A stretch of DNA of 16,350 nt from Ascoidea asiatica JCM 7603 (GCA_001600695.1 BCKQ01000016.1:38800-55149), one strand, 5' to 3'; counted from the stretch's first letter, positions 1-16,350 are shown. The notes: generated by a model not told the origin, from the sequence alone. Program-made: numbers and translations.

Positions 1-730
1 TTTGAAATAGAAAAATTATCAAAGTAACTATTACTTTTTATTAATAAGTATAATTTATATATTGTATCTTAAACAGAAGCATAAACACAATAAGTAAATA
101 AGTATATAGACAAATAAACAATTCTATCTTTCACCAATATCAATTCCTCTTTTCAACCAATATCAGTTACCACTTTAAAATTCAAACTTACCAAAGTCGC
201 GAGAGGAAATGGTTGCAGGAAATACAAGACCAATTTGATCAAGATTGACAGAACAGTATTGCAATAAGGAAAATACCAGTTTGTAAATTGGAACCAATAT
301 TAGATCAAACTGATTGATTTCTTATTCTAGGATATTTATTCTTATTTTTCCTTTTAAATGTGTTTCCCCAAAATTGATTTATTTTATTAAGCTGAATCCT
401 ATTAAGTTCCAATTTTTATTGTATCAGGTGGAATCCTATTGAGTCCCAATTATTGATAAAGAAGTGAGTAAATATTATATTTATATGGCTTTTAACCTGC
501 TAATATGAACTGCTTTGTTTTATTAAACTAAAGAAAAGAAAGTGTAGAAAGAAAAGGTTTTTAAATAAACATGAACGAAAGAAAAAGAGAAAACGAAAAT
601 TTGCCACCTTGACGGAAAACAAAGGACACGACCTACGGAAAATAGGACGGACACGGAAAGGAACGGAAAACCAAAATGAAGGATAATCTCATAAATAGAA
701 AGATTTACTAGGGTGAGTTTAACAGCTTTG

Positions 731-1767
731 TGTTGTGAATGTTCATTCATTTTACAAAATCGAATATATAAATTTTAGGTACTTACAAACTATCTATTAA
801 TCAATTAACTCGTGCTAATCGATGATCTCACAAGAAAACTAAATAAATTATATAAAAAATAAGAGGAAATCGATTCCTTTTATATTAATTAAGGATTCCT
901 ACGGGGTCCCGCAGAACTATCGAGAATTCTCGGGAATTCCCAAAAGTCCCAGGATTCCTTCGTAGAATCAGGGTGGGAATCAAGTTTACCTTGTAAATAG
1001 GGATGAAAACTTGATCAGAAATCAATTGAAATTCACATTTCAATTTGACCATAGTAAAACCAATCAGCCCACGTTCCAGTGGGGTAGATAATCCACTAAT
1101 TTCCGTGAATAATCTTTAAACCCGAAGCCGTACTCGGAGTAGATCCCTTACGTGACTATCTCCACTAGTCTTCTGTTTACTCCGAGACAATTCGGTATAC
1201 GCAGTGAAAATTATACCTTATCTCAGATGAAACTAGGCTTAGCCAATCTAGCCATCCAGAAGGCGTCCCTGCCTGGATCCGATTGGCCTTTCGGATTAAA
1301 CTTCTATCCGTATACACGCTAAATCCTAACTCCTCTTTAATTCTCCTCGTACCGAGTCGCTTAGCTTTAATATGCTCTTAAAGGTTGTACGACTATGGCT
1401 GGTACCAATCTCAAGGTCATTTCTACTTTGTACGCTATACCAGACGTAAGCACACATGACCTATTATATGTGACTAGAATATCACATGATATCCGACTAT
1501 CTGTGCACCTGTACACAGACTCATGCAAGGTCATGTAAATTGATGTATTTTTTGTGCCACTTCATGCGACTTTACGCAACAATATGTTTATTTATGCCTA
1601 ATTATGCATCTCTATGCATAATTATACATAGTGTACACACATTATTGTATAATACATAATTCTTTTACGTTTACGATAGATAGGTGTCTGTCTTTTAGAC
1701 CTTCACCACCTATGGTGTTAGTACCAATATATGCCCTAGCATATATAGATCTCTATTATTTCCAACA
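731..1767 (-). mobile_element. Solo LTR of an LTR retrotransposon (Ty1/copia-like termini), 1037 bp
   Basis: Starts TGTTG (731) and ends CAACA (1767), flanked by an identical 5-bp TSD CTTTG at 726-730 and 1768-1772. GC-richer than the flanks, non-coding, with internal short repeats. The minus-strand 5' end TGTTGGAAATAA resembles the Ty1 delta start, and a minus-strand TATAAAAG at 884-877 suggests minus orientation. Confidence 0.85.
877..941 (-). promoter_or_regulatory. Putative LTR promoter: TATA box plus step-type HSE-like element
   Basis: TATAAAAG on the minus strand at 884-877. GAA at 914, 924 and 934 (10-bp spacing), overlapping the palindromes CGAGAATTCTCG (921-932) and GGGAATTCCC (932-941). 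Confidence 0.4.
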
Positions 1768-2174
1768 CTTTGGGTAGTATTTTTTTCAGTGTTTGTATAG
1801 TCACAAATTTTAAAACTTGTTTAGAGGAAAACCAAATTGGAATCAAGAACCATTACCTTCCACGAACCATTGATGAGTATTTGCAGTCTCAAAAAGTTGA
1901 GTAATTGCTGAATTATGCAGTATATTGAAATAACGTTTATATAACTATATAAGTATTTAGATTATTAAACATTCATTTAAGTTTTGTACATGTTTTTTCA
2001 GCTTTTTGTGGAGAACACTACTCTAGAATTGTATAATTTGGATTTAATAAAAATGTTAAATGATTACTAGTTCTTTCTAGTTGCAACATGTAAAATAATC
2101 AATTTATTATCCAATAACTGAAAACTCACAGTACCTCCAGAAACTCCAGAAAAATAAGAATGTCATAGGTAGAT

Positions 2175-2591
2175 AAATTAGTTAAATTTGAAAAATCATT
2201 ATTACTATCATGAATTAAAATTAATTGATCCAAATTAAAGTCATACTCAAATATTTTTAATTTTACCAAAAAAAATATATGATAAAACACCTTCAACATC
2301 ATTACCTTTCATAATATTTTCAAATCGAGCCATTAAAATTCTATGTAATTCTTGTACATCAGGATCGATGAATGCATCACAATTAACCCAAAAAAAAATT
2401 CGTGTTAAATCAGAAGTAGCAACAGAGGCTTGTCAAGTTAGTAATTGAAAAGCTAATCCTTGCAAAGAAATTCTATTAGAATTATCATCATTAGAAGGCA
2501 TTTTATAAAGAATGGTTCTAAAATATATTCAATAAAAATAAGCTTGTAATACCAACTTTAAATCAAATTTTGCTCCTTGAATTAGTTAACT
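2175..2591 (-). pseudogene. UBP15: USP7/Ubp15 ubiquitin-specific protease, catalytic-domain N-terminal fragment
   Basis: Reads (KLTN/fs)QGAKFDLKLVLQAYFY*IYFRTILYKMP...DLTRIFFWVNCDAFIDPDVQELHRILMARFENIMKGNDVEGVLSYIFFGKIK. This matches recalled Ubp15 NQGATCYLNSLLQSYFF...ELTRSFGW...[37 protein letters not shown]. Contains stops and frameshifts, and the catalytic Cys is lost. Confidence 0.88.
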
Positions 2592-2649
2592 TTGATAACT
2601 CATCAGTATTTTTATTATTATTAGTTTTCTTATTGGAATTCATCGTGCT

Positions 2650-3630
2650 ATTATCATCAGTGAATAAAGATTAGACAGTTATTAGAGAAAATAATCGACC
2701 ACGTGTTTTAACTTCATTTAATAAATGATATTTTTGATTATTTAATAAAACAGATTCATCATTATTATAATTATTATTTACACTAGAATCTAAATTGTCA
2801 TTAAAAATGTCATTAGATTTGCCATTGAACTTTTGATTTGAATTGTTGTTGTTATTATTATTATTTTTAAAATTTTCAATTTTATTAAAAAAAAAATTAA
2901 TTGTACCTTCAATAATAGTTGGGAAACTAATAGAAGTAACTAAAAATCAAATTTTATTTTTATCTAATTTTTGAATAGATTTTGTTAATTCATGAAATTC
3001 AGGTTTTTCCAAATAACCCAATAATTTAATAGCATATTTAAATTCATTTGAGAAATTTGAAAATTGAGGTTGATTTACACCATTTTTATCATTATTATTA
3101 TTATGATTATTATTATTATGATTGTTATTATTATGATTATTATTATTATAAAAATCATCGATAACATCAACTGCGAAACTTTTTTTTGAATTTGAATTAT
3201 GAGAATTTGGTAAGATTATTTGATTATCTAATGGTAAACTCGAATATTTTGTTCAATACTTATATCTTACAAATGAATAAATTAAAGCAGTGATAATTAT
3301 CAATATCAATAATAATGAAGTGAACGGTAAAGTTATTGAAATAGTTGTTGATAATAAAGGTATTATAGATATTATAAATTAAGATACACAATATACTAAA
3401 GTATTAAAGAACCATTTAAATGGCCAAAGAATTATCTAAAATATAGATATTGGAATTTTTGAATTTTTTGATTATAATTATTATTAATTATATTTATATC
3501 AACATTTGAAGGTGAATAAGTTTCTTCATTAAATATTGACGATGAACTTAAATTTGTGAAAATATTACTCACAACTGATATAATGAGATTGGTAAAAGGT
3601 GGATAAGATTCAAAAATATTTATGATTTTA
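2650..3630 (-). pseudogene. NTE1: Lysophospholipase Nte1 (neuropathy target esterase) N-terminal fragment: TM region and start of the first cNMP-binding region
   Basis: Hydrophobic ITLPFTSLLLILIIITALIYSFVRYKY*TKYSSLP, then NEFKYAIKLLGYLEKPEFHELTKSIQ and YHLLNEVKTRGRLFSLITV*SLFTDD. These match recalled fungal Nte1 VRYRYLxxYSRLP, [26 protein letters not shown] and YQLLTEVKNGxxxSSLFSILSLFTED. Confidence 0.85.
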
Positions 3631-3834
3631 TTTATATTTATGTTTATCTATGATACTTATTATATTTAATAATAAGTCATTAAATGAATTGAAATGAACC
3701 AAATGAATTGAAATAAAATATTATTTTAGAAAATTTAGTATTAATTTAAATTTAAAAGTTCTAAAAACATTTGACAGATTTTTTAAAATGAATAAAATTA
3801 AATTGGTTAGGTTAAACAAACCTATCCAATTTTT

Positions 3835-4036
3835 GTTTCTGAATCATAATTTAAAACGTATCCCATTAAACACCAATTGAATGTTGAATAACATTTATAA
3901 ATTCAGTTAAATTTAAATTCTTATTAGAAGATAAATAACCTGCATTAAACTTTTGAACTTTTGATAAACTTCTTATATTGCCCAAGAAGTTGCGGGAGGC
4001 TTCTGAATTGGCTGTACAGATCAAGATATTGAACAT
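3835..4036 (-). pseudogene. Decayed 5' gene fragment, possibly a mitochondrial precursor (weakly homoaconitase Lys4-like)
   Basis: ATG at 4036: MFNILICTANSEASRNFLGNIRSLSKVQKFNAGYLSSNKNLNLTEFINVIQHSIGV*WDTF*. NLTE...IQHSIGV loosely resembles the Lys4 N-terminus QNLTEKIVQxxxVGL. Confidence 0.3.
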
Positions 4037-4529
4037 GATGATGATTCTTAATTATATCTAATATGATTACTAATCAGCTAAAATAACTAAAAAATATTAA
4101 AAAATAAAAGTAAAATGTGTATTTGAGACGTAGATTAAAAAATAAAAACTATGTAGTAGGTTTTTGTATAAAATCTTCGCTAAGAAAAAAAAGTAAAACT
4201 TGAAGTTTTTCTAAAAGAAAATTTTAAGCTACTTATAGTAATCAAAAAAGACTGAAAATACAGTGAAGATCAAATAAAAATTTGTTAAAACAAATATGTG
4301 TGTATCGAAATAATGACAACCTATAATTTTTTTTAAAAAATAAAATTGCATGTTCTTGCGGAAAGTAAAAAATAAATTGAAAAAAAAATAATATTGGAAA
4401 AAATGCAGGACTGCATTTTTGGTTAGTAAAAAAATATTTCAGGAAATTATTTAACTTGTAATTGTTTAGTTGAATATTGAATATGTATTTTAAAAGATAA
4501 ATAATTCGCTTCGTATGTTAAAATATAGT

Positions 4530-5518
4530 ATTATATCCGGTTGACTGGATCCATGTAAACTAGTTCTTTTTACATATATGTACAAACAGTGTTGTACTTG
4601 CTGCCAACTGCCTTTGGAGGGTACAACTTTTGTTTTGGATTTATAATTTGTTTAGTCATCAGCATGATTTATATCCAAAATGTACTCGTTGGATGTTCCA
4701 TAATGACACTGGAAAATATATGATTCTTCGAGCAAAATCCTGTTCCATTTGTAATTCAGCTAATGAACAGGTACAAGTTTTAGAGGTTGTGGATGTTGCT
4801 CTTTAGTTGTTCGGCAATAATTAAAATGACAAATTTGCTGTGAATCTTCAAACTCATTTGGTCAGAGAAAATCAAATTGTAGTCTTGGCTGTTAGTGTTG
4901 AAATGTGTTGATAAGTGTTAAAACGTGATAAGTAATTTAAACGCTGTAGAAGGATTAGCTGTCGTAGCTGTATTATTGTTTGCAATAATAGTATCAGACG
5001 TAGTAGGTGTTATTTGATTTGAAGCTGACTTAGTCAAATTAGATGAATGCAATGATGTAGCTGGGTTAGACAAATAAGGTGGCGTAGATGCGTTCAAGGA
5101 ATTAGATGAAGTAGTTGAATTTCAAAAATCAATTCCCCTAGTTGTATTAGTTGTATTATGTTGACTTTTTTGACTTAGTTAATTTACTTATATCAGTTTA
5201 ATTAGTTCAATTAGTAGTATTAGTTGAATTACTTAAGTTTACTTTTTTAGTTGAGTTAGTTGAGTTAGTTGAGTTAGTTGTGTTAGTTAATAATATTAAC
5301 TATTGTTGACTGAGATTAACTTATTCGATGGTTTTAATTGATTCTTGGAGTGATTGTTTAAATTGTTTTGTTTGATTTGGTTTGTTGTTTTGGGAACCTT
5401 TTGCAGTGGATGCATATGTGGTACATTTAAATTATATTGTTATGGAAATTGAATCACGGGATCTTTCGTTTTGGGGTTGGAAAAGGAAAGTTTGAATGAT
5501 CATGTTAGAGGTTACTTA
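4530..5518 (-). pseudogene. Decayed Ser/Thr/Asn-rich low-complexity ORF followed by an unidentified domain fragment
   Basis: Broken frames give TNSTNSTNST, ASTPPYLSNPATSLHSSNLTKSASNQITPTTSDT and CHFNYCRTTKEQHPQPLKLVPVH*LNYKWNRILLEESYIFQC, with several stops and frameshifts. Confidence 0.4.
5247..5288. repeat. 9-bp tandem repeat (TTAGTTGAG) x ~4.7
   Basis: Directly visible; encodes Asn-Ser-Thr repeats on the minus strand. Confidence 0.9.
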
Positions 5519-5524
5519 TTGACA

Positions 5525-6039
5525 ACTCATAAACGAGAGTCAAATGGTTTAAGTATGGAACTTAAACCTGGAGCAGGTTCTGCTACAATATGAACAAAAT
5601 TTGTAAAACCTCAGTAAGTTTTGTTTTTATAAAATTTATGATGAGTTTGATTAGAAAATTTTTTATTTATATCTTTTTTTAGATCGGGTACTGGTTGCAA
5701 ATACATTGCCACCGAATTATTATTATTACCATTTGGAAAAAATAAAATATTATAATTAAAATTACCAACATTATAAATTGGAGAAGTAAATTTTGAATCT
5801 TTAATAATTGTAGAAATTATAATTTTCCATGTAAAATATTTTGAATCTTTAATTTTATAATTTTTAATTTCAGTTGAATAATTTAACCAAAATTTAAAAT
5901 CAGTTGCAGGAGTTATATTTTTTATTTCTAAAATTTCAGATTGCCACTTAAGCTTATGATAATTATTATTCTTAATAACTTGAGGACTATTATTTTTATT
6001 ATTATTAGTTGGGATGGTAGTTGAATTATTTGATTTAGA
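5525..6039 (-). pseudogene. UBP15: USP7/Ubp15 N-terminal MATH/TRAF domain fragment
   Basis: YFTWKI...KFTSPIYNVGNFNYNILFFPNGNNNNSVAMYLQPVP...NQTHHKFYKNKTY*GFTNFV...ILKPFDSRL*. This matches recalled Ubp15 FTWNI...KYNSPRFRIGDFEWDILLFPQGNHNKGVAVYLEPHP...NKSHHRF...DWGFANL...ILKDPTGVLW. Confidence 0.85.
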
Positions 6040-6112
6040 GTATATAAGAAAAGAATATAAAAGATAAGAATATAGAAGATAAGATTAAATAAAGGACTTG
6101 TTTTTTGGGTTT

Positions 6113-6742
6113 TTAACTAGAGGATTTGAAAAACTCTTCAATTTCTTCTATAAATTTTTCATATATATCATTATTATCATCAGTTTTAGAATAATCATAA
6201 TAGCTATCTGAACAGTTTGATTCAGTTGACCTATTACAATCATCATAATCATTATAATCATCATGATCATAATCCAAATCATAATCATCAGCTTCATTAC
6301 TGACATCACTAATATTATAGAAATTATTTGGTTTATTTAAACTTTGTGAATGATTAATATTAATTTCAGTATCAAATATATCTAAAGTATTGATAAAAAA
6401 ATCAAAATTATTAAATTCATTAATATTATTCATATTCGGATTCAGATTCATCAAATCTAATGAATTATTATTAAAAAAAGTATTGATATTATTTTCATTT
6501 GTACCATCTAAAGTCATTAATGTAACTATACCATTATTATTAACATTTAAATTAGAGTCAAAAGAATTTATTAATTCATCAATTACATTTAAATAAATTG
6601 GATTAGTATTATAAAATTGTAATAATTCATCTGTATTCATACTAATTATTTCATTCGTATTCACAGAAGATGAATAATCTGACATTTTATCAGAAAATAA
6701 ATTATCATCACAAGATAAATTATTATCATTTTTATAATTCAT
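6113..6742 (-). CDS. Hypothetical Asn/Asp-rich protein, 209 aa
   Basis: Uninterrupted ATG-to-stop ORF of 630 nt in very AT-rich DNA; low complexity, no recognisable domain. Confidence 0.5.
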   Translation of the reverse strand: MNYKNDNNLSCDDNLFSDKMSDYSSSVNTNEIISMNTDELLQFYNTNPIYLNVIDELINSFDSNLNVNNNGIVTLMTLDGTNENNINTFFNNNSLDLMNLNPNMNNINEFNNFDFFINTLDIFDTEININHSQSLNKPNNFYNISDVSNEADDYDLDYDHDDYNDYDDCNRSTESNCSDSYYDYSKTDDNNDIYEKFIEEIEEFFKSSS

Positions 6743-6984
6743 TACTACTACTGATTTGTAAATGACATAGCGATTATATAAAGAAAGGAAAAATAAATTT
6801 AAAGTTAATTAATCAAAAATTAAAGAAAAAATATGTATATTTATATTATTTTTTTTTTGAATGAGAATCTACTTGAAAATAAAGGTAGGAAGTATGAAAA
6901 ATCATTGAAAAAATGAAATTTAATAATATTTGTTATATTTAAATAGATTTAAAGTAATGAAATTCATTCAAGAGGGGTTTTATG

Positions 6985-7378
6985 TTAGAAAATGAATAGT
7001 AATAATAATTTTATAATTGGTATAAGATACAGAATTGAAATTAATATTAATATGAGCATCAAAATTTTCCTAAGGTTTTTTAAAATAAGAATATGAAGAA
7101 GAATAATTAAAGAAGGCATATATTTCGTTATCGTTATCAAACTTCTTGATATTTGGATTATTTATATTATTATGATTGATATCAATATTCTTATCTACAT
7201 CAGTATGATCAATTTGAATAAGGTCACGTTCATCATCATCATAGTTATCCTCATTATCATCAATATTTTCGTCAAACTTTATATGGAATTGTCATTATTT
7301 GAAGGAGCAGAATTATCAGTTAAATCAATATTATTTATAATTTTATTAATATTATAAATAATATTGCTATTATTATTT
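6985..7378 (-). pseudogene. Decayed Asp/Asn-rich coding fragment
   Basis: Frameshifted reading ...FDENIDDNEDNYDDDERDLIQIDHTDVDKNIDINHNN...KKP*ENFDAH with codon-like periodicity. Confidence 0.4.
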
Positions 7379-7499
7379 TTTTTTCTAATAATATTTCTAT
7401 AAGTTAAATTCAATTAAAAAGTTTAATTATCTATTTAGTATTTAAATAATTTAATTTATTTCATATTAATAACAAATCAAAATTTTTAAAATTGTAAGA

Positions 7500-7801
7500 G
7501 AGTGTTATTAATAACATTTTAAAATAATTTAATTGAAATTTTGAAAACTTATTTCAATGTAAAATGTTTAAATAATAAATTTTTTACTGATAAGTTTTCA
7601 TCTATTTATAAACTATTTGATGATATTATGGATTTTGCTATCCCTCAGGTTGCTGCTTGTCAAACTTAGAATAAATATATTAAATTAACAAAATCAAGTT
7701 TCATTTCATCAAATAAGAATAATAACACAATTAGTGACTATGATCAATATGATGAATTTTATAATCAAATATAAAATAACAATAACAATATTAACAATAA
7801 C

Positions 7802-7837
<36 letters not shown>

Positions 7838-8235
7838 TCAAGATGTTAAATGGTTTATACTAATAAAAATCAATTAGAAATTGAAATTTATTCAAAAATT
7901 ATTAAACTTTAATGATAATAAATATCTTGGAGAAGAAAAAGTATATTTTATAAAGAAAATAAACAACAAAGATTAACTTTTATTTCTGGTTCAAATGTTT
8001 GTGACTCTTCTCTTTATCTTGCTTGCTTTTTATAAAACGTTATACAAAACAAAAAGAAAATATTTCTCCTAATATGTTATTACAATTATTTAATGATTTA
8101 TTAATTGTTGATAGTTTTGATAAAGGTTTACTAACTAGAATTGCTGCTAGTGCAGTTATTCAAGAATTATTTAAAAGATATGGTTTAATAGTTCGGTCCA
8201 ATATTATTGAATAAGCCGCGATATTATATGTTTTT
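7500..8235 (+). pseudogene. Laa1/HEATR5-like (AP-1 accessory HEAT protein) N-terminal fragment
   Basis: SIYKLFDDIMDFAIPQV...poly-N...LLQLFNDLLIVDSFDKGLLTRIAASAVIQELFKRYGLIV resembles recalled Laa1 AKDIACTILVQLFENFG and HEATR5 TKLAAVACVGAFYEKMG. Contains stops and frameshifts. Confidence 0.45.
7802..7837. repeat. (AAT)12 microsatellite
   Basis: Directly visible; a poly-Asn relic. Confidence 0.95.
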
Positions 8236-8261
8236 ACTTAATTTTTATTATGATAATTATT

Positions 8262-8829
8262 TGATACCAATTTGGACCATGATTAACAGTAAGAATCAAA
8301 GCATTAATCAGGTAGAAAAACTAATTTTATTAAAAGAAATTTCAAAAGAATTTTGAAAAGGAGTTGTATTTTCTTCTGGAGCCCTTCAAGGATCAGATTC
8401 TACTATTATTAATTCTTCAGATACTATGGTCTGGTTTTTTAATAAAAAAATGTCAACAGCCAAATTTATTATAAGTAATATTATGAATCATTTAAATAAT
8501 GAAGATTATAAAATGGTAGAAGAGATTGAATTAAATAATATTAATAATATAAAAGAGGAATCTAAATCCACTGTTGTTACAGATTGATTATCCATATTAA
8601 AAATTTCTTCTAACAACGTTGTGAACTCTAAAATCAGAGGAGGCAGAAATACTTCTGGAAGAACCCCTCGTATTGATTTAGCTAGTAAGGATTTTTGAAT
8701 AATTGATTGGTTAAAAGACAACTAGGTTGTTCAAATTTATTAGCAAAATTATTTGATGCAAATATCAAATTACTAAATTACAAAAATGAATTAAAATATA
8801 AAATGAACTTACTGATAAATCATTTTTAA
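8262..8829 (+). pseudogene. Unidentified decayed coding fragment
   Basis: Long frame broken by three TGA codons: ...KEISKEF*KGVVFSSGALQGSDS...TD*LSILKISSNNVVNSKIRGGRNTSGRTPRIDLASKDF*IIDWLKDN, then a frameshift and LLINHF* at 8829. Confidence 0.55.
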
Positions 8830-9063
8830 GGAATGTGAGCCTATCAAATCCTGTTTTTCAATTATTATTGTTTTAATCTATTTTGAATTTTATAAATATT
8901 CAAACGTTTAAGCCATCCAAGCGTTTTAATAAAGTCTTTTAAGTATTAATTTTAGTACAATAAAAGCATTACAACTCCTAAATATGTAATCACAAAAGGT
9001 AAAGCTACTAATGAACTTACTATATTTACTATAAATGAAAAAATGAATTCCAATTAAAATTAC

Positions 9064-9909
9064 CTAGAGATTTGTTTCTGAGTTTTGTACCAGGACTTGT
9101 AGAAGTTCTTTCATATCGTGAATGGATTTTTCAAGCTGCTCCGCCCTTGTTAATAAATTATCACTTAGTAGTTCAGGTTGGTGTTCATTCACAATGCTGA
9201 CAGGTGTCTTTATGGCGTCTAAAAAAAGATCTAAATCGTTTTTTGTTTTATCGGTTTTTCGTCTTTTAGGTGTTTGCATTTCTAATCTATCAGATAATCT
9301 GAGAGGTCTTCAACATCAAGCATTCATTGGGTATTTCCAAAGTTGTCTGACATGGGCTTTGGTTCTTTTTGAATTTGTTTTGCCAATCGATTGGTTAGTG
9401 TTTTGGATTCCATTTTTTTGATAGCAAACAGTTTTATTTGCAATCACCTATTTTTCTTATTTGCTTTTCCTTTAATAAATTTTGCTTCATATCGACATTC
9501 TCTTTTTCTTTTTCAAATAATAATAAATAAGTTTGAGTAATTTCGGTTTCTGAAAAAAAGTCTTGCCCCACCACCTGTACCAGATCCATTCTTATTTTCT
9601 TTTGGAAAAAGTTTAAACTCATTGTATTCTTTTGTAAAACGTTGCTTAAACGTTTTGGCTAAAACAAATGAGGTTATTATATTTTTGTTAAACATGGCAT
9701 GCAATGTTTTCCTGTTTTTTTTTTGCGACTCGTCTGCTAAAGTCAAGTATTTCTGGCATTAGATTTAAAACCAACTTTGCTAGTGCTAAATCTGTCATTG
9801 GTAAAAATTTATATTTTCTGATTTCATCAAAGTTTTCTATTTCAGTGATTAAGAGTATTAAAATGGAAAAGCATTTTATTCAATAGTTTGTTAAGATATC
9901 TTGACGCAT
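9064..9909 (-). mobile_element. Degenerate Myb/SANT-like accessory ORF, PIF/Harbinger-type
   Basis: Joining the ORF-track frames gives ...LHAMFNKNIITSFVLAKTFKQRFTKEYNEFKLFPKENKNGSGTGGG...TPKRRK...coiled-coil end. A basic helix ending in SGxG, an NLS and a C-terminal coiled coil are typical of Harbinger Myb/SANT proteins. No DDE transposase of that family was seen. Confidence 0.4.
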
Positions 9910-10739
9910 TACAAAAATTGTTTTTTTATAACCTTATTTTATTGTACAACTTAGTTTATTGTAATTTTTTATATATAATAATTTTAATTTAAAACCGTTA
10001 TGTCGTTAGTGAAGTGCGTGGGACTCGCAGGGTCCGAGCTTTAGTTTTGTAAACAAACTTCTTTGAAAAATCAAAACATCAGTTACAAAATGGTATGTTG
10101 TTGCGTGCTAAAAAAACCCAAATGTAAATGGATCAGGGAATGCCAGCTATAAAATAAATGGAGCTGATAGCTCCCTTTATCTTGTAACTGGAGCTCAAAG
10201 TGGCTTCCTCTTATACCTGCAGTTCACGTGCTGTTGAGTTATAGCTGCACTTATGCATATCAAAACTTTTGCAAAACTGCTTTTTGTCTCATAACTAGTT
10301 CTCTAACTGTCTTTCAATTATAACAGTAAGTCACGAGACTTCTTCCTATAGGTCCACATATTAAACAACAATTGTGGAAGATTGCGCGAGTAAATCCCGG
10401 CAAAAGTTTGATAGAATAATTGAAAATGAGGACGAATTATTGAATATTACTATCCTCTAAATTAGAAATTATCAAATTTGAAATTGACGAAAAATGTTTT
10501 GATGAACCAACCCATTAGATTGAATATTAATCATATCAAATACAAAAATATCTGTTATTGTAATAAACTATTAACTTATTAATATATATTATAATGATAT
10601 TTTTCTTGATTGTTCTTCCTGTGATTTCTAATATATTCTAGTTTAATAAATGTTTTGTTCTTTTTCATCTTTTTCAGACCAATCGTATTACATTGATAAA
10701 AGTAATGTTTGAATAATAAATTCAAACTTTTCAGATTTT

Positions 10740-11600
10740 CGTCACATTGCACAAAAACATTAGCCCTCTCATACAAACGGCACCCAAACACAGTTTCTAC
10801 ATTTGTGGTGTGTTGATAAAATTGAGCTTATTAAGATGTTTTTACTTTTGTACAACCATGCGGAATTCGATTCATGTATAATAAATCCTTTTGTAATTAT
10901 TTCCAAGCTTCTTAGGATAATTGTATCTTATTAAAAACTTTGTAATTGTTTTACCAGGATGGGGAATCTTGTTAATATTTTGAAAAAACTTTCCAATTAA
11001 TAGAAAGTCCTTAGAAACAGTAACAAGTTTCTGAGAAATTTTATCTTTTCACAAAAATGCAAAGTTCCGTGCGTGATTACATAAGAACTTTGTAACTATT
11101 AGAAAGTTTTTGAACATTATCATTTTGCACTTGGAACACCATAACAAATATCCAGTAGTATTACCCGTGATGCCAGGTTATTTTCAATTTCTGTCCCCGA
11201 ATTGATAACACGAACTAATGAGCAAGACTTTTGCTAGCTAATTTATGTTCTACACACGGCGCACCATGTTTTTGGAAACGATTGCCAAAAAACTTAGGTT
11301 TATATTTTAGTGCCCAAATCATTATTAGTTTATGAACACCTGGCATATGCAACAAGAATTTTATCAACGCTTAGTTTTAGCATACAAAGTTGTGGGAATT
11401 AATGCAGGTGAAATGAATATTTCTGCTGAAAAAAAATATGATTGAGAAGCTTGGTTTCCATTTACACTGGAATATAAGGAATTACTTTCATGTTTCGATT
11501 TTACTACATATCAAGGAAGAAATTAAAAAATTAGATGTAATATTAAGAAAGGTCCTGCAGATAAAACGAAAAACGGCCATTGTTTCAATTCTACATTTTG
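10740..11600 (-). mobile_element. Degenerate, internally deleted piggyBac-like transposase
   Basis: Motifs occur in the expected order across frames: ETMAVFRFICRTFLNI (cf. xTMSRNRF...FLH), LSVDKILVAYAR (cf. LSVDExMVxFxGR), YKPKFFG (cf. KPxKYG), TTGYLL, AFL*KDK...LVTVS (cf. WKDxxxVxxLST) and C-terminal ETVFGCRL...C (Cys-rich tail). No TTAA-CCC termini found. Confidence 0.55.
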
Positions 11601-12496
11601 TGCCACCGCAAGATGTTTTAATTTGCTTTATAAAGCAAATTTGTGGCAGACAATAAAGTATGTTTTCCTGCAAAATCTGAAACAAGCATTTCAAAAACAC
11701 AGTTAGGTGCAAAACGTTATCTAAAATAGCGCTTTAATTTCTTAATCAAATAAATTAATTAAAGTAATAAAAATAAAATAATATTAATAAATGTAGATAA
11801 TATCATCAACGGTTATATATAATAAACTAAGATAACTTAAATTAAAATATAAATAAATAAAATAGGATGAATAAAGAGTATTCAACTTATTTATATTAAC
11901 TTGAAAATAAAACTAATTTTTAAAATAAAATCAGAAACTTAATTTGTAAACCTAAATCGCGTACAAATTAATAGCAAAAACATAAAAAGAATTTAAGAGG
12001 AATTGAGTTTTGATTAAACAAAATCCGCAAATCAAACAAATTCAAAACGCAATTAAACATTACATTAATTAAGACAACAGTTCAATCCAACAACAGAATC
12101 GCTAACTTATCAAATCAGTTAATAACAAGAGCTCTGCAAGTTAACCAATTAATTATAACTAATTAAAATTTTAAATGGTTCAACTAAACTAAAAACCCAA
12201 TTTCATTTTGCAGCCAAATATTAAACTTGCCTTTTATACAAAAAGGCACTTTAACTAAAACACTACCAACTTTAATTAATAAGAATAATTTTACCATATA
12301 ATATTTAAATTGCCTTTTGAAAGTTAAGGCAACTTAAATTTATTACCATCCAAAATAATGGTTGAAATTTCAAAACCAAATATGTGGAACACCTTTAAAA
12401 CATATGTTGGTTGTAACAAAAACATGTGACATAAACAAATAGAAAAACAAAAATAAAACAAAACATAAATCAAAAACAAATTATAATTGAAAATTA

Positions 12497-12664
12497 ATAA
12501 TTGCCAAGGATGCAATATTCATCACTTTAAAAAATTATCCAAATGAAGATGGTTTAGTTGTTCCTGAAGTTTTAAGAGAGTAAATTCCAGGTGAACCAGA
12601 ATTTTTACCTTTTGTTAAAGAACTTCCTAAAAATTCTATTAGTAAGAAAGTGGGTAAAAAATAA
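12497..12664 (+). pseudogene. SES1: Cytosolic seryl-tRNA synthetase C-terminal fragment
   Basis: TLKNYPNEDGLVVPEVLRE*IPGEPEFLPFVKELPKNSISKKVGKK* versus recalled yeast Ses1 ILENYQTEDGLVVPEVLRKYIPGEPEFLPFVNELPKNS. Internal TAA at 12581. Confidence 0.9.
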
Positions 12665-12699
12665 GCTTTTAGCTCTTTTAAATTTTGAATACAGGAATT

Positions 12700-13156
12700 G
12701 AAATCTTTTATAGTAATACAAAAAATCAAATTTCAATTATATGAACTTGGAAGTTGTAGCATGTTTTTGTTTAAACGTTTATTGATTCTATAAAAGTTCT
12801 TGGAATATAGAATTTGGTACATCAATTTCATATTCTTTTGTTCCTTTTATAAGCAATGGAATTAGTTCTCCTTTTCCTACAAAAAAACTATAATGACAGG
12901 CTATTTTCAATACTTCTTAAATCACAGTTTATATGGATATAAGAATCTGTTTGATAATGATTTAGCCTATAACTTTTTTCAAATACTTCAAAAGTTATAA
13001 ATTTTTTTATTTTTTCATGAAATTGTTCAGAAGTTTCATTTATAAGTGTCTTATTATTGTTGTCTGAAGAATCATCTTGAAAAACTATAGGGGGATAATC
13101 TTTTTGTTATTGTGATTTCGAAGATCATTTTCATCTTTTTGACCTTTAAGGTCCAT
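12700..13156 (-). pseudogene. Unidentified decayed 5' gene fragment
   Basis: ATG at 13156, MDLKGQKDENDLRNHN..., then a frameshift to ...HINCDLRSIENSLSL*FFVGKGELIPLLIKGTKEYEIDVPNSIFQELL*. Confidence 0.4.
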
Positions 13157-13469
13157 AAATTTTAAAATAATAAGATAAATTAATAATGTAACGTAATAAT
13201 AATCAGCAAAATATTAAATAAAATTAAAATAAAACTATCGATAATACAAATGAGCTTGTGAATCAATCTTTAACTAAGCATCTAAATTATTATGTAAATC
13301 AGTTTCTGAATAACTGTCGTTATCATGTTTTAAATCATTAAAAATAGAATCAAATTTTCTTTTAAGATTGATACCTTTTTAATGATTTTGATTTTGATTA
13401 TAATTACTAATTAATTGAATATTGGAAGTTGATATGAAATTTTTAACAATTAACGAATTTATATTGTTA

Positions 13470-14131
13470 TTAATATTTTTAATAAAAAAATTGAATAAAA
13501 TTAATCTAATATTATTAAATTTTTTTAATTTTGATTAGTTTAAGTATTGAATTTGTCTAACGGGTAAATTATAAAAAAGATTATTAATAATAATTATTGT
13601 ACCAGAACATGGAATTAAATCACCAATTGAATTAAAAATAAAAGAAATTGGAATATTAGATTTATTTTTAAAATATTATTTATAATTTTATTATGAATTT
13701 GAAATCAAATTTACAAAAGGATCATTATTAGAATATTGAACTGAGTATATGGTAATATTGTTATTTGGTAATAATTTTGTAAATTTTCCATTAATAAAAG
13801 ATTTTATATGAGTTGAATTGGGATCTTTTGATTTTGAAATTATGAACAAATTTTCAGAATATTTTATAATTGAATGTAATAAAGTATATGAAGTTTCTAA
13901 ATTTGCTAAGATTATTGGAAATCTTCCAATTCAATCATCTTTTAGAATAAAACTTAAGTTATTTAAATTTGATTTTAATTTCAAATTCAAATTTGTATTT
14001 GAGCTTGAATTTAAATTTATAATGAAATTTTGAGAAAAATTTACAATTTCTTTAATTACAATATTAATTGAATTTATTTTATCTTCCGAAGTTATTAAAG
14101 AAGCTAAATCATCATCCAAAGATTTTATATA
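13470..14131 (-). pseudogene. MLH3: MutL-family Mlh3 N-terminal GHKL ATPase fragment
   Basis: IKSLDDDLASLITS...IVIKEIVNFS...NLSFILKDD*IG...LHSIIKYSENLFIISKSKDPNS...DPF...SGTIIIINNLFYNLPVR...KKFNNIR. This matches recalled Mlh3 IRKLDSNV...AVREIVQNS...NLSFAVYDDGIG...LYSISNVSNLFVCSKKKDYNS...DPF...SGTVVIVEDMLYNLPVR...KTFNTIK. Confidence 0.85.
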
Positions 14132-14925
14132 AATGAGAAATCGTAAATTTTGTAGTTCGAAATATTTGTGCACTTGAAAATGGTGTAAATTTGTTGATCT
14201 AAGGAGACTTGTTTGATTTGTTTTTATTAAAAATGAGTTGAATCTTTTTGATGCCTGTATCAATCTTTTGAGAAATAGTTGGTATTATTGAATTTTTCTT
14301 CACCAGTTATAAACATTTGAACAGGTTCTGTTGCACTTTAAGCAGTTAAGAATTTATTTTCAATGGACAAATTTAATCATTAAATTTTTGTACTATAAAT
14401 TGAAGTTTCAAACTAATATAATTATTAACTAGATTTTGTTAAAAATTTTCATTATAGTTCATTGTTATATAATTATTATTATTTTTATGATAGCAAATGT
14501 TTATTTAAAAACCTAACATATTTACATGCTGATATTTTAGAATTATGAATAAAATTAATTTCCAAGCACTGGTTTGCCAAATGGGATTTTTATTGTTTTT
14601 AAAGATACTCGGGAAAGTTCCAATAATATTAGTGGGCCACGGGTTTGCTGAAATTTCCCAATGTTGATTTTCAGGATTTCCCGACAAGAAAAAGTAGTAC
14701 CGCAAAAAAATAAGCAATTTATCCTTGCCCTGGAAATGGTGAAGTGAATACGAAGTGAGCACTTGCGTTTGGTGCTGGCGCACATTCCCTTGTTCAGTTT
14801 ACAGAGGGTCCCCGAGTATTTTAACAAATTTTGATCAAGTCTGCATATAATTATAAGTATATAGTTCTACAAAGATGGGTGACTCAATATAAAAGGAGCT
14901 AAAAGGTTCACTTTGTTTTTATGTG

Positions 14926-15333
14926 TCATTTGGCATCTCTATGATCATTATTATCGCTAATTAGCTTAACATCTTCTTTTAAAATGCTTCTACCAATTTC
15001 ATTGAAACTTGAAGGATTTGTTTTATCCATTTTAGCATACGCATTTGTTGTTTCGATGGTTGGTATTGAATGTCCTGGAATCTTTAATGATCCTGGTAAC
15101 GGTAAAATATGCTTTTGATTACTTGAGGTTGAACCTGCAATATTGATAGATGATTTATTGTAATCGTTATAATTATTTGATATGTTTAATGTTGACTTTT
15201 TATAATTTGATGTTTGGGATCCATAACTACCTACATAATCTCTAGAATTATTATTATAATTACTAACATTAGAAATGTTATTAGTGAAAGATTGACTATT
15301 AGTGTGGTAGCTATAATTTTTATTATTATTATA

Positions 15334-15402
<69 letters not shown>

Positions 15403-16350
15403 GTTATTATTGTTATGATTAGTAGCAGTAGTAGTATTATTATGTTTATCACTATAATTATTAACTAAAGTAGTACCGGCAGCAGGAAATTCCTGGTTCA
15501 AATTCAATCCAGAGGAGTTGGAGTTATTTGAGTAGAAAGGGAATGGTAAACTACTAAATGATCCATTATTATAATATATTTGATTACTACCATAATTGTT
15601 ATTAAAATTATTGTTATAATAGTTATTGTAACTGTTATTAAGATTAGAATGAGGATTATTGTTGAAAGTACTGTTGAGATTATTATTCGATAATCTTGAG
15701 ATATAACTATTATGAAAGTTTGGGGATCCAGATAATAAATTATAATTACTCATTGGTGATGGTGAACTAAAGCTTGAGCCCCTACTATGACTTACATTAA
15801 CATTTTGAGAATGATTTTGTTGAGAATATTGACTATGATGAATTATTTGATTGACTTGTATTGCTGGATTTTGGTGATTTATGCTGTAACTAGACTCAAC
15901 AGGATTTTGATTCTGGCTCTTTTCTGCGTTAGCATGATGATTTGGTAGTAGCATACTAACGGTTAAGCTTTCAGTTAAAGCCTCATTGAAAGATTTCATA
16001 GAATTGAATTTTTTCAATGGATTCTTTTCCAAAATAAACGAGGCAGAATTATTAATCATTTTACTCTGAGCAATATTATCAGTAGCATTAATATTATTCA
16101 GGTGATTTAACTGATTGTTGACATTATTAATAGTATTGCTATTAATGATAGTGTTACTATTATTTTTGGATATATTACCTCTTAGAATACTGCCATTATT
16201 TGGAGATAATGAAGAAGAATTATTGAATCGAGATTGAGACACGTTATCGATCATTTTCAATAATTGGGGTATATCATCATCTGGATAAGAAGAATTGCTG
16301 AGAGCATTATTGTTTTTGGTTCTTTTATTATTATTATTATTATTATTATT
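14926..16350 (-). CDS. 3' part of an Asn/Ser-rich low-complexity protein, probably regulatory; truncated by the window edge
   Basis: The frame stays open from 16350 (NNNNNNNNKRTKNNNALSNSSYPDDDIPQLLKMIDN...) to the TGA at 14928-14926, at least 474 codons without stops. No folded domain falls inside the window. Confidence 0.85.
15334..15402. repeat. (ATT)23 microsatellite encoding poly-Asn
   Basis: Directly visible inside the CDS. Confidence 0.95.

Follow-up and report, generated by a model that had tools for sequence, protein, structure and literature searches.

Two decayed DNA transposons with nested host-gene pieces in the budding yeast Ascoidea asiatica

Gene pieces and repeats in the window

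The stretch of DNA analysed here (the window, 16,350 nucleotides, G000:C16:38800-55149) belongs to Ascoidea asiatica JCM 7603, of which the assembly comprises 20,313,720 bases in 71 contigs; C followed by a number denotes a contig, and bare coordinates are window positions. Comparison with the whole assembly divided the window into repeats of high copy number, arms of low copy number and pieces of host genes that have a donor elsewhere. The window consists of two adjacent pack elements, A and B, each a transposon with terminal inverted repeats (TIRs) and a cargo of host-gene pieces, which are broken up by four ordinary mobile insertions (Table 1). All copy counts are lower bounds, and C16 upstream of the window, all other copies (sisters) of element B and five of the parent genes are known from coordinate tables and short pattern matches.

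Table 1. Features of the window, grouped by element; strands are given where assigned.
Position	Strand	Feature	Relatives and remarks
Element A
1768-1985	+	3′ end of transposase region, inner left arm	83% to C1 copy, continuous with C1 transposase
1985-2157	-	cargo 1, PDR5/CDR1-like ABC transporter remnant	parent C2:2308116-2308470 and 2307122-2308010; longer in C1 and C15b copies
2165-2616	-	cargo 2a, UBP15 piece	internal deletion at 11-bp imperfect microhomology (2255-2265)
2578-3799	-	cargo 3, 5′ part of NTE1 and ca. 220 nt upstream of first ATG, inside UBP15	parent C5:1181172-1182475, 12% substitutions
3812-3976	-	cargo 2b, UBP15 resumes	86% to parent
5590-6043	-	cargo 2c, UBP15 MATH-domain region	84-88% to parent
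6044-7012	-	cargo 4, orphan insert inside UBP15	this copy only; open 209-codon ORF 6113-6742
7013-7418	-	cargo 2d, UBP15 5′ region	82-85% to parent
7412-7963	+	cargo 5, 5′ part of adaptor-complex medium (mu) subunit gene	parent C11:35506-36028; PF00928 E=2e-32
8001-8812	+	cargo 6, TBCD/CIN1-like gene, two parts	parent C12:76446-76672 and 78877-79478, 88-90%, 1822-aa frame
8795-8938		cargo 7, short piece of unnamed locus	C10:314969-315240, 82-84%; common to both C15 sisters
9021-9909	-	broken second ORF, convergent with transposase (limits approximate)	relatives: two C15 sisters only
10153-10286	-	right arm and right TIR	end common to C15:378228, C3:1423230, C38, C43
Element B
10287-10437	+	probably strongly decayed SES1 coding sequence	would continue the frame of 11355 onward across the LTR
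11355-11625	+	cargo 1a, SES1 catalytic-domain piece	fungal seryl-tRNA synthetase E=1e-5; parent C5:286460, 498-aa frame; sisters C3, C10 twice
12526-13173	+	cargo 1b, SES1 3′ end and ca. 0.5 kb downstream flank	C5:286743-287396, 92%
13251-14129	-	cargo 2, 5′ part of MutL-family gene (MLH3-like)	parent C3:1362278-1363765, 87%, 930-aa frame
14257-14446		cargo 3, piece of unnamed locus	C2:2406391-2406579, 78%
14447-14808	-	right arm and right TIR (14792-14808)	17-mer common to sisters and MITE
Mobile insertions
1-724		3′ part of LTR retroelement in left arm of element A	LTR (TG..CA) 498-724; LTR copy C16:33611-33806, LTR pair C3:48026/55216
731-1767		solo LTR, TGTTG..CAACA, later ordinary insertion	5-bp target duplication CTTTG; at least 33 other copies, 85-93%
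3977-5589		unclassified TA-flanked repeat element, this copy only	ca. 2.55 kb elsewhere, at least 11 copies; empty site in parent and both C15 sisters
10438-11354		solo LTR-like repeat, TATTG..CAACA	target duplication CGAAT/AGAAT; at least 10 copies, 69-83%
11627-12525		0.9-kb high-copy repeat, probably solo LTR, within SES1 piece	at least 17 copies; sisters lack the repeat, 11625 joined to 12526
ORF, open reading frame; LTR, long terminal repeat; MITE, miniature inverted-repeat transposable element.

As the initial annotation had described, the coding pieces are partial and decayed; they number at least ten within 1985-14446, and a search of the assembly placed the donors of nine of them on six contigs (two each on C2, C5 and C12, one each on C3, C10 and C11), not adjacent at one locus, so that no simple duplication is involved; the remaining piece is an orphan ORF without a parent. 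Long open frames were observed for six parents: UBP15 (at least 1090 aa), NTE1 (at least 899 aa), the adaptor mu subunit (AP-mu, 654 aa), the MLH3-like gene (930 aa), SES1 (498 aa) and the TBCD-like gene (1822 aa). The pieces diverge from their parents by 8-25%, and the same joints recur in sister copies that differ by 14-23%. Decay of the cargo is neutral and amounts to ca. 15% from the parents, with ratios of non-synonymous to synonymous differences (pN/pS) of 0.5-1.2, 4-11 new stops per piece and many frameshifts.

Several statements of the initial annotation were modified by these comparisons. It took the pieces for a single 12-kb mosaic; the pieces are real, but they belong to two elements, of which A starts 6.6 kb upstream of the window, and within the 12 kb ca. 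4.4 kb consists not of cargo but of inserted repeats (3977-5589, 10438-11354, 11627-12525) or the second transposon ORF (ORF2, ca. 9021-9909). UBP15 was recognised correctly, in four pieces and not in two. No LAA1-like piece was found; the HEAT-like segment 8001-8812, most likely the one meant, is TBCD-like instead, on a Pfam match to ARM_TBCD_2nd that lies below the cut-off (E=0.002), and it gave no match in PDB or Atlas. The piece named MLH3 belongs to the MutL family on a weak PMS1/MutL match (E=0.24) and its 930-aa parent, and the choice of MLH3 over another MutL paralogue is the naming of that annotation. SES1 is indeed a copy of an intact gene elsewhere, on C5. Many of the pieces had further been called gene ends, mostly 5′ ones, which holds for five of the seven named pieces, SES1 being a 3′ end and the TBCD-like piece internal. 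That all are decayed is true of the named cargo, but not of the orphan, which has no parent and an open frame of 209 codons.

The carrier elements

Element A is a two-ORF element of the PHIS superfamily, of Pangu type and with an ANT target. Its TIR of 15 bp, AG[G/A]GCAATTTTGCAC, is found on the left at C16:32152 (1 mismatch) and on the right at 10272-10286 (12/15 to the family consensus). The left end is shared by C16:32149-33619 (83%) and C15:366981, both alignments starting at the TIR; the left arm is broken at C16:33619 by an LTR retroelement and the solo LTR and picks up again at 1768, where 1768-2088 continues a C1 sequence with a short TIR at its start and a broken transposase inside. 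The transposase domain PF13359 (DDE_Tnp_4) exceeds the cut-off only at C16:33193-33456 (37.4 bits) and C1:5833-6192, with one stop in each. ORF2 gave no Pfam match in its stop-free pieces and is Myb/SANT-like by eye only. Sister similarity begins and ends at the TIRs, and each copy has different flanks.

A DDE_Tnp_4-type transposase and short TIRs at both ends are features of PHIS elements, and the sequence of A appears to match the Pangu group of that superfamily (PMC4482050), with its ANT target and TIRs of 11-40 bp starting AG or GG. In A the ANT target is seen at family level: the TIR motif with an ANT flank gave 23 matches versus 3 in the control, N is complementary at both ends in four MITE pairs, and AGT is duplicated at both ends of the MITEs C3:1450467 and C15:250220. 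As far as the available part of the Pangu description goes, the likeness extends to a TIR starting AG and to a DDE transposase accompanied by a second ORF without detected motif, whereas cargo is not mentioned there and ORF2 of element A may be Myb/SANT-like as in true Harbingers. The TWA target of PIF/Harbinger elements does not fit, since with 14-bp TIRs only 3 of 12 TA-flanked ends have TWA, and the flanks of a pair differ (e.g. GTA, TAG). Pangu-like MITEs of 0.1-0.35 kb occur at C1:2517266-2517371, C3:1450467-1450776, C14:351167-351513 and C15:250220-250564, two of them with a clean AGT duplication. C3:1423226-1428090 was considered as a full element and discarded for want of a transposase match and of a duplication in its two flanks.

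Seven pieces lie in element A between the transposase and ORF2: PDR5-like, UBP15, NTE1, orphan, AP-mu, TBCD-like and one unnamed piece. They are nested, with UBP15 inside the PDR piece and both NTE1 and the orphan inside UBP15. The PDR piece, of which the C1 copy matches CDR1 (E=3e-12), and UBP15, with the Ascoidea rubescens UBP15 as best relative (76%), derive from C2 and from C12:197.5-199.6k, respectively; the intact parent of UBP15 is C12:197-199k, a stretch at one time regarded as a sister mosaic. NTE1 was named by its cNMP-binding domain, and the UBP15 flanks on either side of it are nearly contiguous in the parent. Between the two parts of the TBCD-like piece 2.2 kb is deleted. The TIR pair 8829/14789 was rejected as an element boundary, since sisters extend to 14808 and 8795-8938 is cargo.

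Sisters of element A with subsets of this cargo are present on C1 and, twice, on C15 (C15a and C15b). In the C1 copy the PDR piece follows directly after the transposase. In C15b it is split, C2:2308470-2308116 being followed by 2.1 kb of UBP15 and then by C2:2308010-2307122, and NTE1 is missing. C15a and the window have NTE1 inside UBP15, followed by the AP-mu and TBCD-like pieces, and C15a retains 0.84 kb of the stretch deleted from the latter; the orphan and the TA-flanked element are found in the window only. The order of content is thus PDR5-like (C1, C15b, C16), then UBP15 (C15b, C15a, C16), then NTE1, AP-mu and TBCD-like (C15a, C16), and finally the orphan (C16). A UBP15 tree of 1060 columns has the form (parent,(C15b,(window,C15a))), with each copy 15% from the parent; the window and C15a share 32 derived sites as compared to 4 and 4 for the other pairs, and the corresponding differences are 17% versus 23%. 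UBP15 was thus captured a single time, and captures alternated with copying. Sisters also hold tiny captured pieces, one of 57 bp matching C3:152053 in the C1 copy (L058:1176-1232) and one of ca. 110 bp in C15b; the coordinates are C7:390-501 and C5:1117429-1117482.

The orphan ORF is rich in Asn and Asp, has ca. 270 nt of insert DNA upstream and ca. 70 nt downstream, and stands open amid broken cargo; the longest frame in 2000 shuffles was 127 codons versus the 209 observed. Neither DNA nor protein comparison located a donor in the assembly, the one weak match (C1:2109055-2109295) being of low complexity, and Pfam, Atlas and a search of 1.8 billion proteins yielded no relative, the sole match, to a bacterial TPR-repeat protein, being spurious. 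The insert is either recent with a donor outside the assembly, or was moved and not copied, or is under selection.

Element B is a second TIR element, of a TIR family distinct from that of A, which carries SES1, MLH3-like and a third piece and is found at four sites. The segment 11355-14808, minus the 0.9-kb repeat, recurs at C3:254991-257019 and C10:660307-662334 (83-94%) and partly at C10:622255-623188, and on the right the sister similarity stops exactly at 14808. The last 17 bases (1 mismatch) form inward pairs at C3:254991-258146, at C10:660307-663415 and in the MITE C26:47642-47782, and occur also at C10:602262. The SES1 donor, including its downstream flank, is C5:286464-287396. After the right TIR of element A, 151 bases continue the SES1 frame, which suggests that A landed in the SES1 piece of B, a weaker point than those above; we take 10287-10437 to resemble SES1, and neither a DNA match to it nor a match in PDB was found. 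Decay has gone further in the left part of B (10260-11625), with 80-84% to sisters and parent and no alignment possible at 10287-10437, than in the right part (12526-14808; 90-94%).

The TIR of B starts with CCC, a beginning that we regard as piggyBac-like. A piggyBac or pogo assignment is nevertheless not supported, as no copy has an ATAT flank, the window flank is GGGA, and the C3 and C10 alignments end before an adjacent A, which excludes TTAA there. The assembly holds six matches to PF13843, none near a copy of the element B TIR, and the same is true of PF03184 (pogo). The segment 10740-11600, considered as a piggyBac relic, is solo LTR plus SES1, and C16 has no PF13843 match. Relics of piggyBac-type transposases (PF13843) in this budding yeast lie at C29:74056-75198, C32:6544, C15:182850 and C13:390470, and open frames of 825-1245 aa that encode a DDE_1 (pogo-like) domain, at C1:1077310, C5:830339, C2:769946, C5:212440 and C2:237288, represent intact or domesticated transposases.

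Acquisition of the cargo

We consider it likely that A and B are fossil pack-type DNA transposons that were filled stepwise with host-gene pieces and copied to other sites. At each capture a double-strand break or gap within the element would have been filled with a copy of genomic DNA, through template switching guided by microhomology or through end joining, in line with the gap-filling model; the transposase, acting on the TIRs, would have spread the element, and gap repair or replication would have given extra copies. The cargo afterwards decayed neutrally and was struck by LTRs. Short homology or filler is seen at several joints: the UBP15 deletion has an imperfect repeat of 11 bp, UBP15 and AP-mu overlap by 7 bp, and the right NTE1 joint holds ca. 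12 bp of filler. Non-coding flanks were captured with NTE1 and SES1, and a DNA template is therefore favoured. The nesting implies that the mosaics arose neither from a segmental duplication nor from capture of flanking DNA alone. The initial annotation had proposed copying and joining of pieces from dispersed loci in the manner of Pack-MULEs, which the donors on six contigs, the nesting, the sister copies and the TIR-bounded mosaics bear out; the DNA-transposon relics that it saw nearby are present, not as mere neighbours but as the carriers.

Some observations weigh against this interpretation. The joints, with their apparent microhomologies, are 15% decayed and AT-rich. Copy number is low, at four per element, and the copies are mostly truncated. 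Donors lie mostly on other contigs, whereas single-copy Pack-TIRs of animals show a cis bias (PMC8277862). A PF13359 profile search of the assembly found no intact element A transposase, and the window copy of A is flanked by TTT and TTG, with no clean ANT duplication. For B, the left TIR was not found on C16, and the element has no known transposase.

The main rival shares the capture step and differs in the role of the transposon only: the host would make templated insertions anywhere in the genome, the patches would survive only in dispensable, repeat-rich DNA, and the TIR elements would be passive sinks. Such complex insertions from distant loci are known in yeast mutants (PMC11724301), the cargo is found in two unrelated TIR families, and capture continued after the elements had begun to decay. 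However, TIRs delimit the mosaics seen here, which were copied whole to other contigs, with rounds of capture between rounds of copying, and we regard purely passive elements as unlikely. Templating by RNA, in which mRNAs co-packaged in retrotransposon particles are reverse transcribed and cDNA pieces inserted at breaks in the elements, would suit a region rich in LTR elements with mostly coding pieces, and yeast is known to insert cDNA at breaks (PMC11724301); the bias is to 5′ and not 3′ ends, no poly(A) was seen, and the captured DNA extends ca. 0.5 kb downstream for SES1 and 0.2 kb upstream for NTE1, which makes this route very improbable.

A decayed segmental duplication of one locus is refuted by nine donors on six contigs and by pieces nested in pieces, and nothing was found in its favour. 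An assembly artefact might be suspected from the short-read contigs, none of which spans the whole stretch, and is likewise refuted: the pieces differ by 8-25% from their parents, and their joints recur in sisters diverged by 14-23%. Moreover, 89-93% of the sequence words of 2100-9000 are present in three DNA runs from two studies, and in both studies a single Logan contig each spans 5918-7178 and 7846-8090, thus bridging the joints at 6043 and 7013 (orphan) and 7963-8001 (AP-mu/TBCD); the UBP15/AP-mu joint at 7412 is bridged in one study (7340-7573). Logan cover of the two NTE1 joints is marginal, and both recur in C15a. We give either of these two explanations practically no chance.

Pack-MULEs have TIRs of more than 100 bp and target duplications of 8-10 bp, whereas Helitrons lack TIRs and have a 5′ TC and a 3′ hairpin-CTRR end. 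With a TIR of 15 bp and a target of 3 bp element A is no Pack-MULE, and both elements have TIRs, unlike Helitrons (no search was aimed at Rep/helicase); as far as tested, A is thus neither of the two, and B, of an unclassified TIR family, is no Helitron. A and B resemble the plant Pack-TYPE elements, including Pack-PIF and Pack-MULE (PMC8903248), in that host coding fragments (seven pieces in A, three in B) lie between TIRs at several sites, cargo was gained stepwise and moved with the element (A sisters on C1 and twice on C15, B sisters on C3 and twice on C10, similarity ending at the TIRs). Pack-TYPE elements are defined as non-autonomous, with no transposase match. Element B fits, having no PF13843 or PF03184 match, whereas A keeps relics of both ORFs with the cargo between them and, by its broken transposase, is autonomous-derived (PMC8903248). 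Further differences are the budding yeast host, the few copies and the nested fragments from distant loci, as compared to gain from neighbouring DNA in plants. Animal Pack-TIRs, for which gap-filling and FoSTeST models were proposed (PMC8277862), likewise show internal capture, short homologies at joints and later amplification, but their single-copy cases are cis-biased, whereas here a single element drew on up to seven donors, most of them on other contigs.

On the transposase criterion element A resembles the transduplicating elements of Pyrenophora tritici-repentis (a hAT with a histone H3-like gene and a Tc1/mariner with a second ORF; PMC3538342) more than Pack-TYPE elements, both being fungal DNA transposons with transposase and host-like cargo between TIRs. 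The Pyrenophora cases differ in that the host is filamentous and each family has one gene in young, near-identical copies; the present cargo, in a PHIS element, is old and neutral and comes from many genes with donors in the same genome. The templated insertions of S. cerevisiae dna2, rad27 and RPA mutants (PMC11724301) also join pieces from distant loci at one yeast site, but are single events in laboratory mutants, with no transposon carrier and no amplification. It is conceivable, though improbable, that Ascoidea has a host-level propensity for DNA capture, a natural counterpart of Dna2/Rad27-type templated insertion, and that several transposon families are thereby filled with 5′ gene pieces across the genome; the orphan ORF 6113-6742 would then be a gene already retained within a pack element, functional and either moved or newborn.

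Class II elements have been described as very scarce in budding yeasts (PMC4316626), and gene shuffling of this kind is known from plants, animals and one mould, Pyrenophora (PMC3538342). A literature search, for the most part outside subscription papers, found no report of gene capture by class II elements or of PHIS elements in Saccharomycotina, and the words capture and Harbinger are absent from the papers on yeast class II elements (PMC4316626, PMC13469147). Fungal transduplication itself being known (PMC3538342), what is new is the budding-yeast host, the superfamily and the depth of nesting; the locus extends transduplication to Saccharomycotina, with two carriers. Since donors, intermediates and sisters are present in one small genome, the order of capture can be read directly, which makes the question of cargo acquisition (gap filling, neighbour capture or RNA) testable, and the nesting speaks against capture from neighbouring DNA. 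The Harbinger-type element mPing is reported to transpose in S. cerevisiae (PMC2836001), which brings an experimental capture assay within reach. Dead elements with neutral cargo show no adaptive role; their value is that of a fossil, readable record of serial gene capture.

Other repeats and the neighbouring gene

Comparison of the window with itself found no long TIRs or direct repeats. Copies of the LTR-like family of 10438-11354 stand in inverted orientation on both sides of element A, 9 bp away at C16:31248-32140 and 151 bp away in the window. The family of the TA-flanked element at 3977-5589 has very short imperfect inverted ends and a decayed ORF in which no motif was recognised by eye. 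Two different element A copies border at their truncated end on a 0.7-kb high-copy repeat (L058:476-1175, L035:2783-3305), probably an LTR, which contains a TATA box and TTCTAGAA arrays (heat-shock-element-like). The minus strand of 14926-16350 encodes the 3′ part of a single-copy, Asn-rich host ORF with no Pfam match, which ends 118 bp from the TIR of element B.

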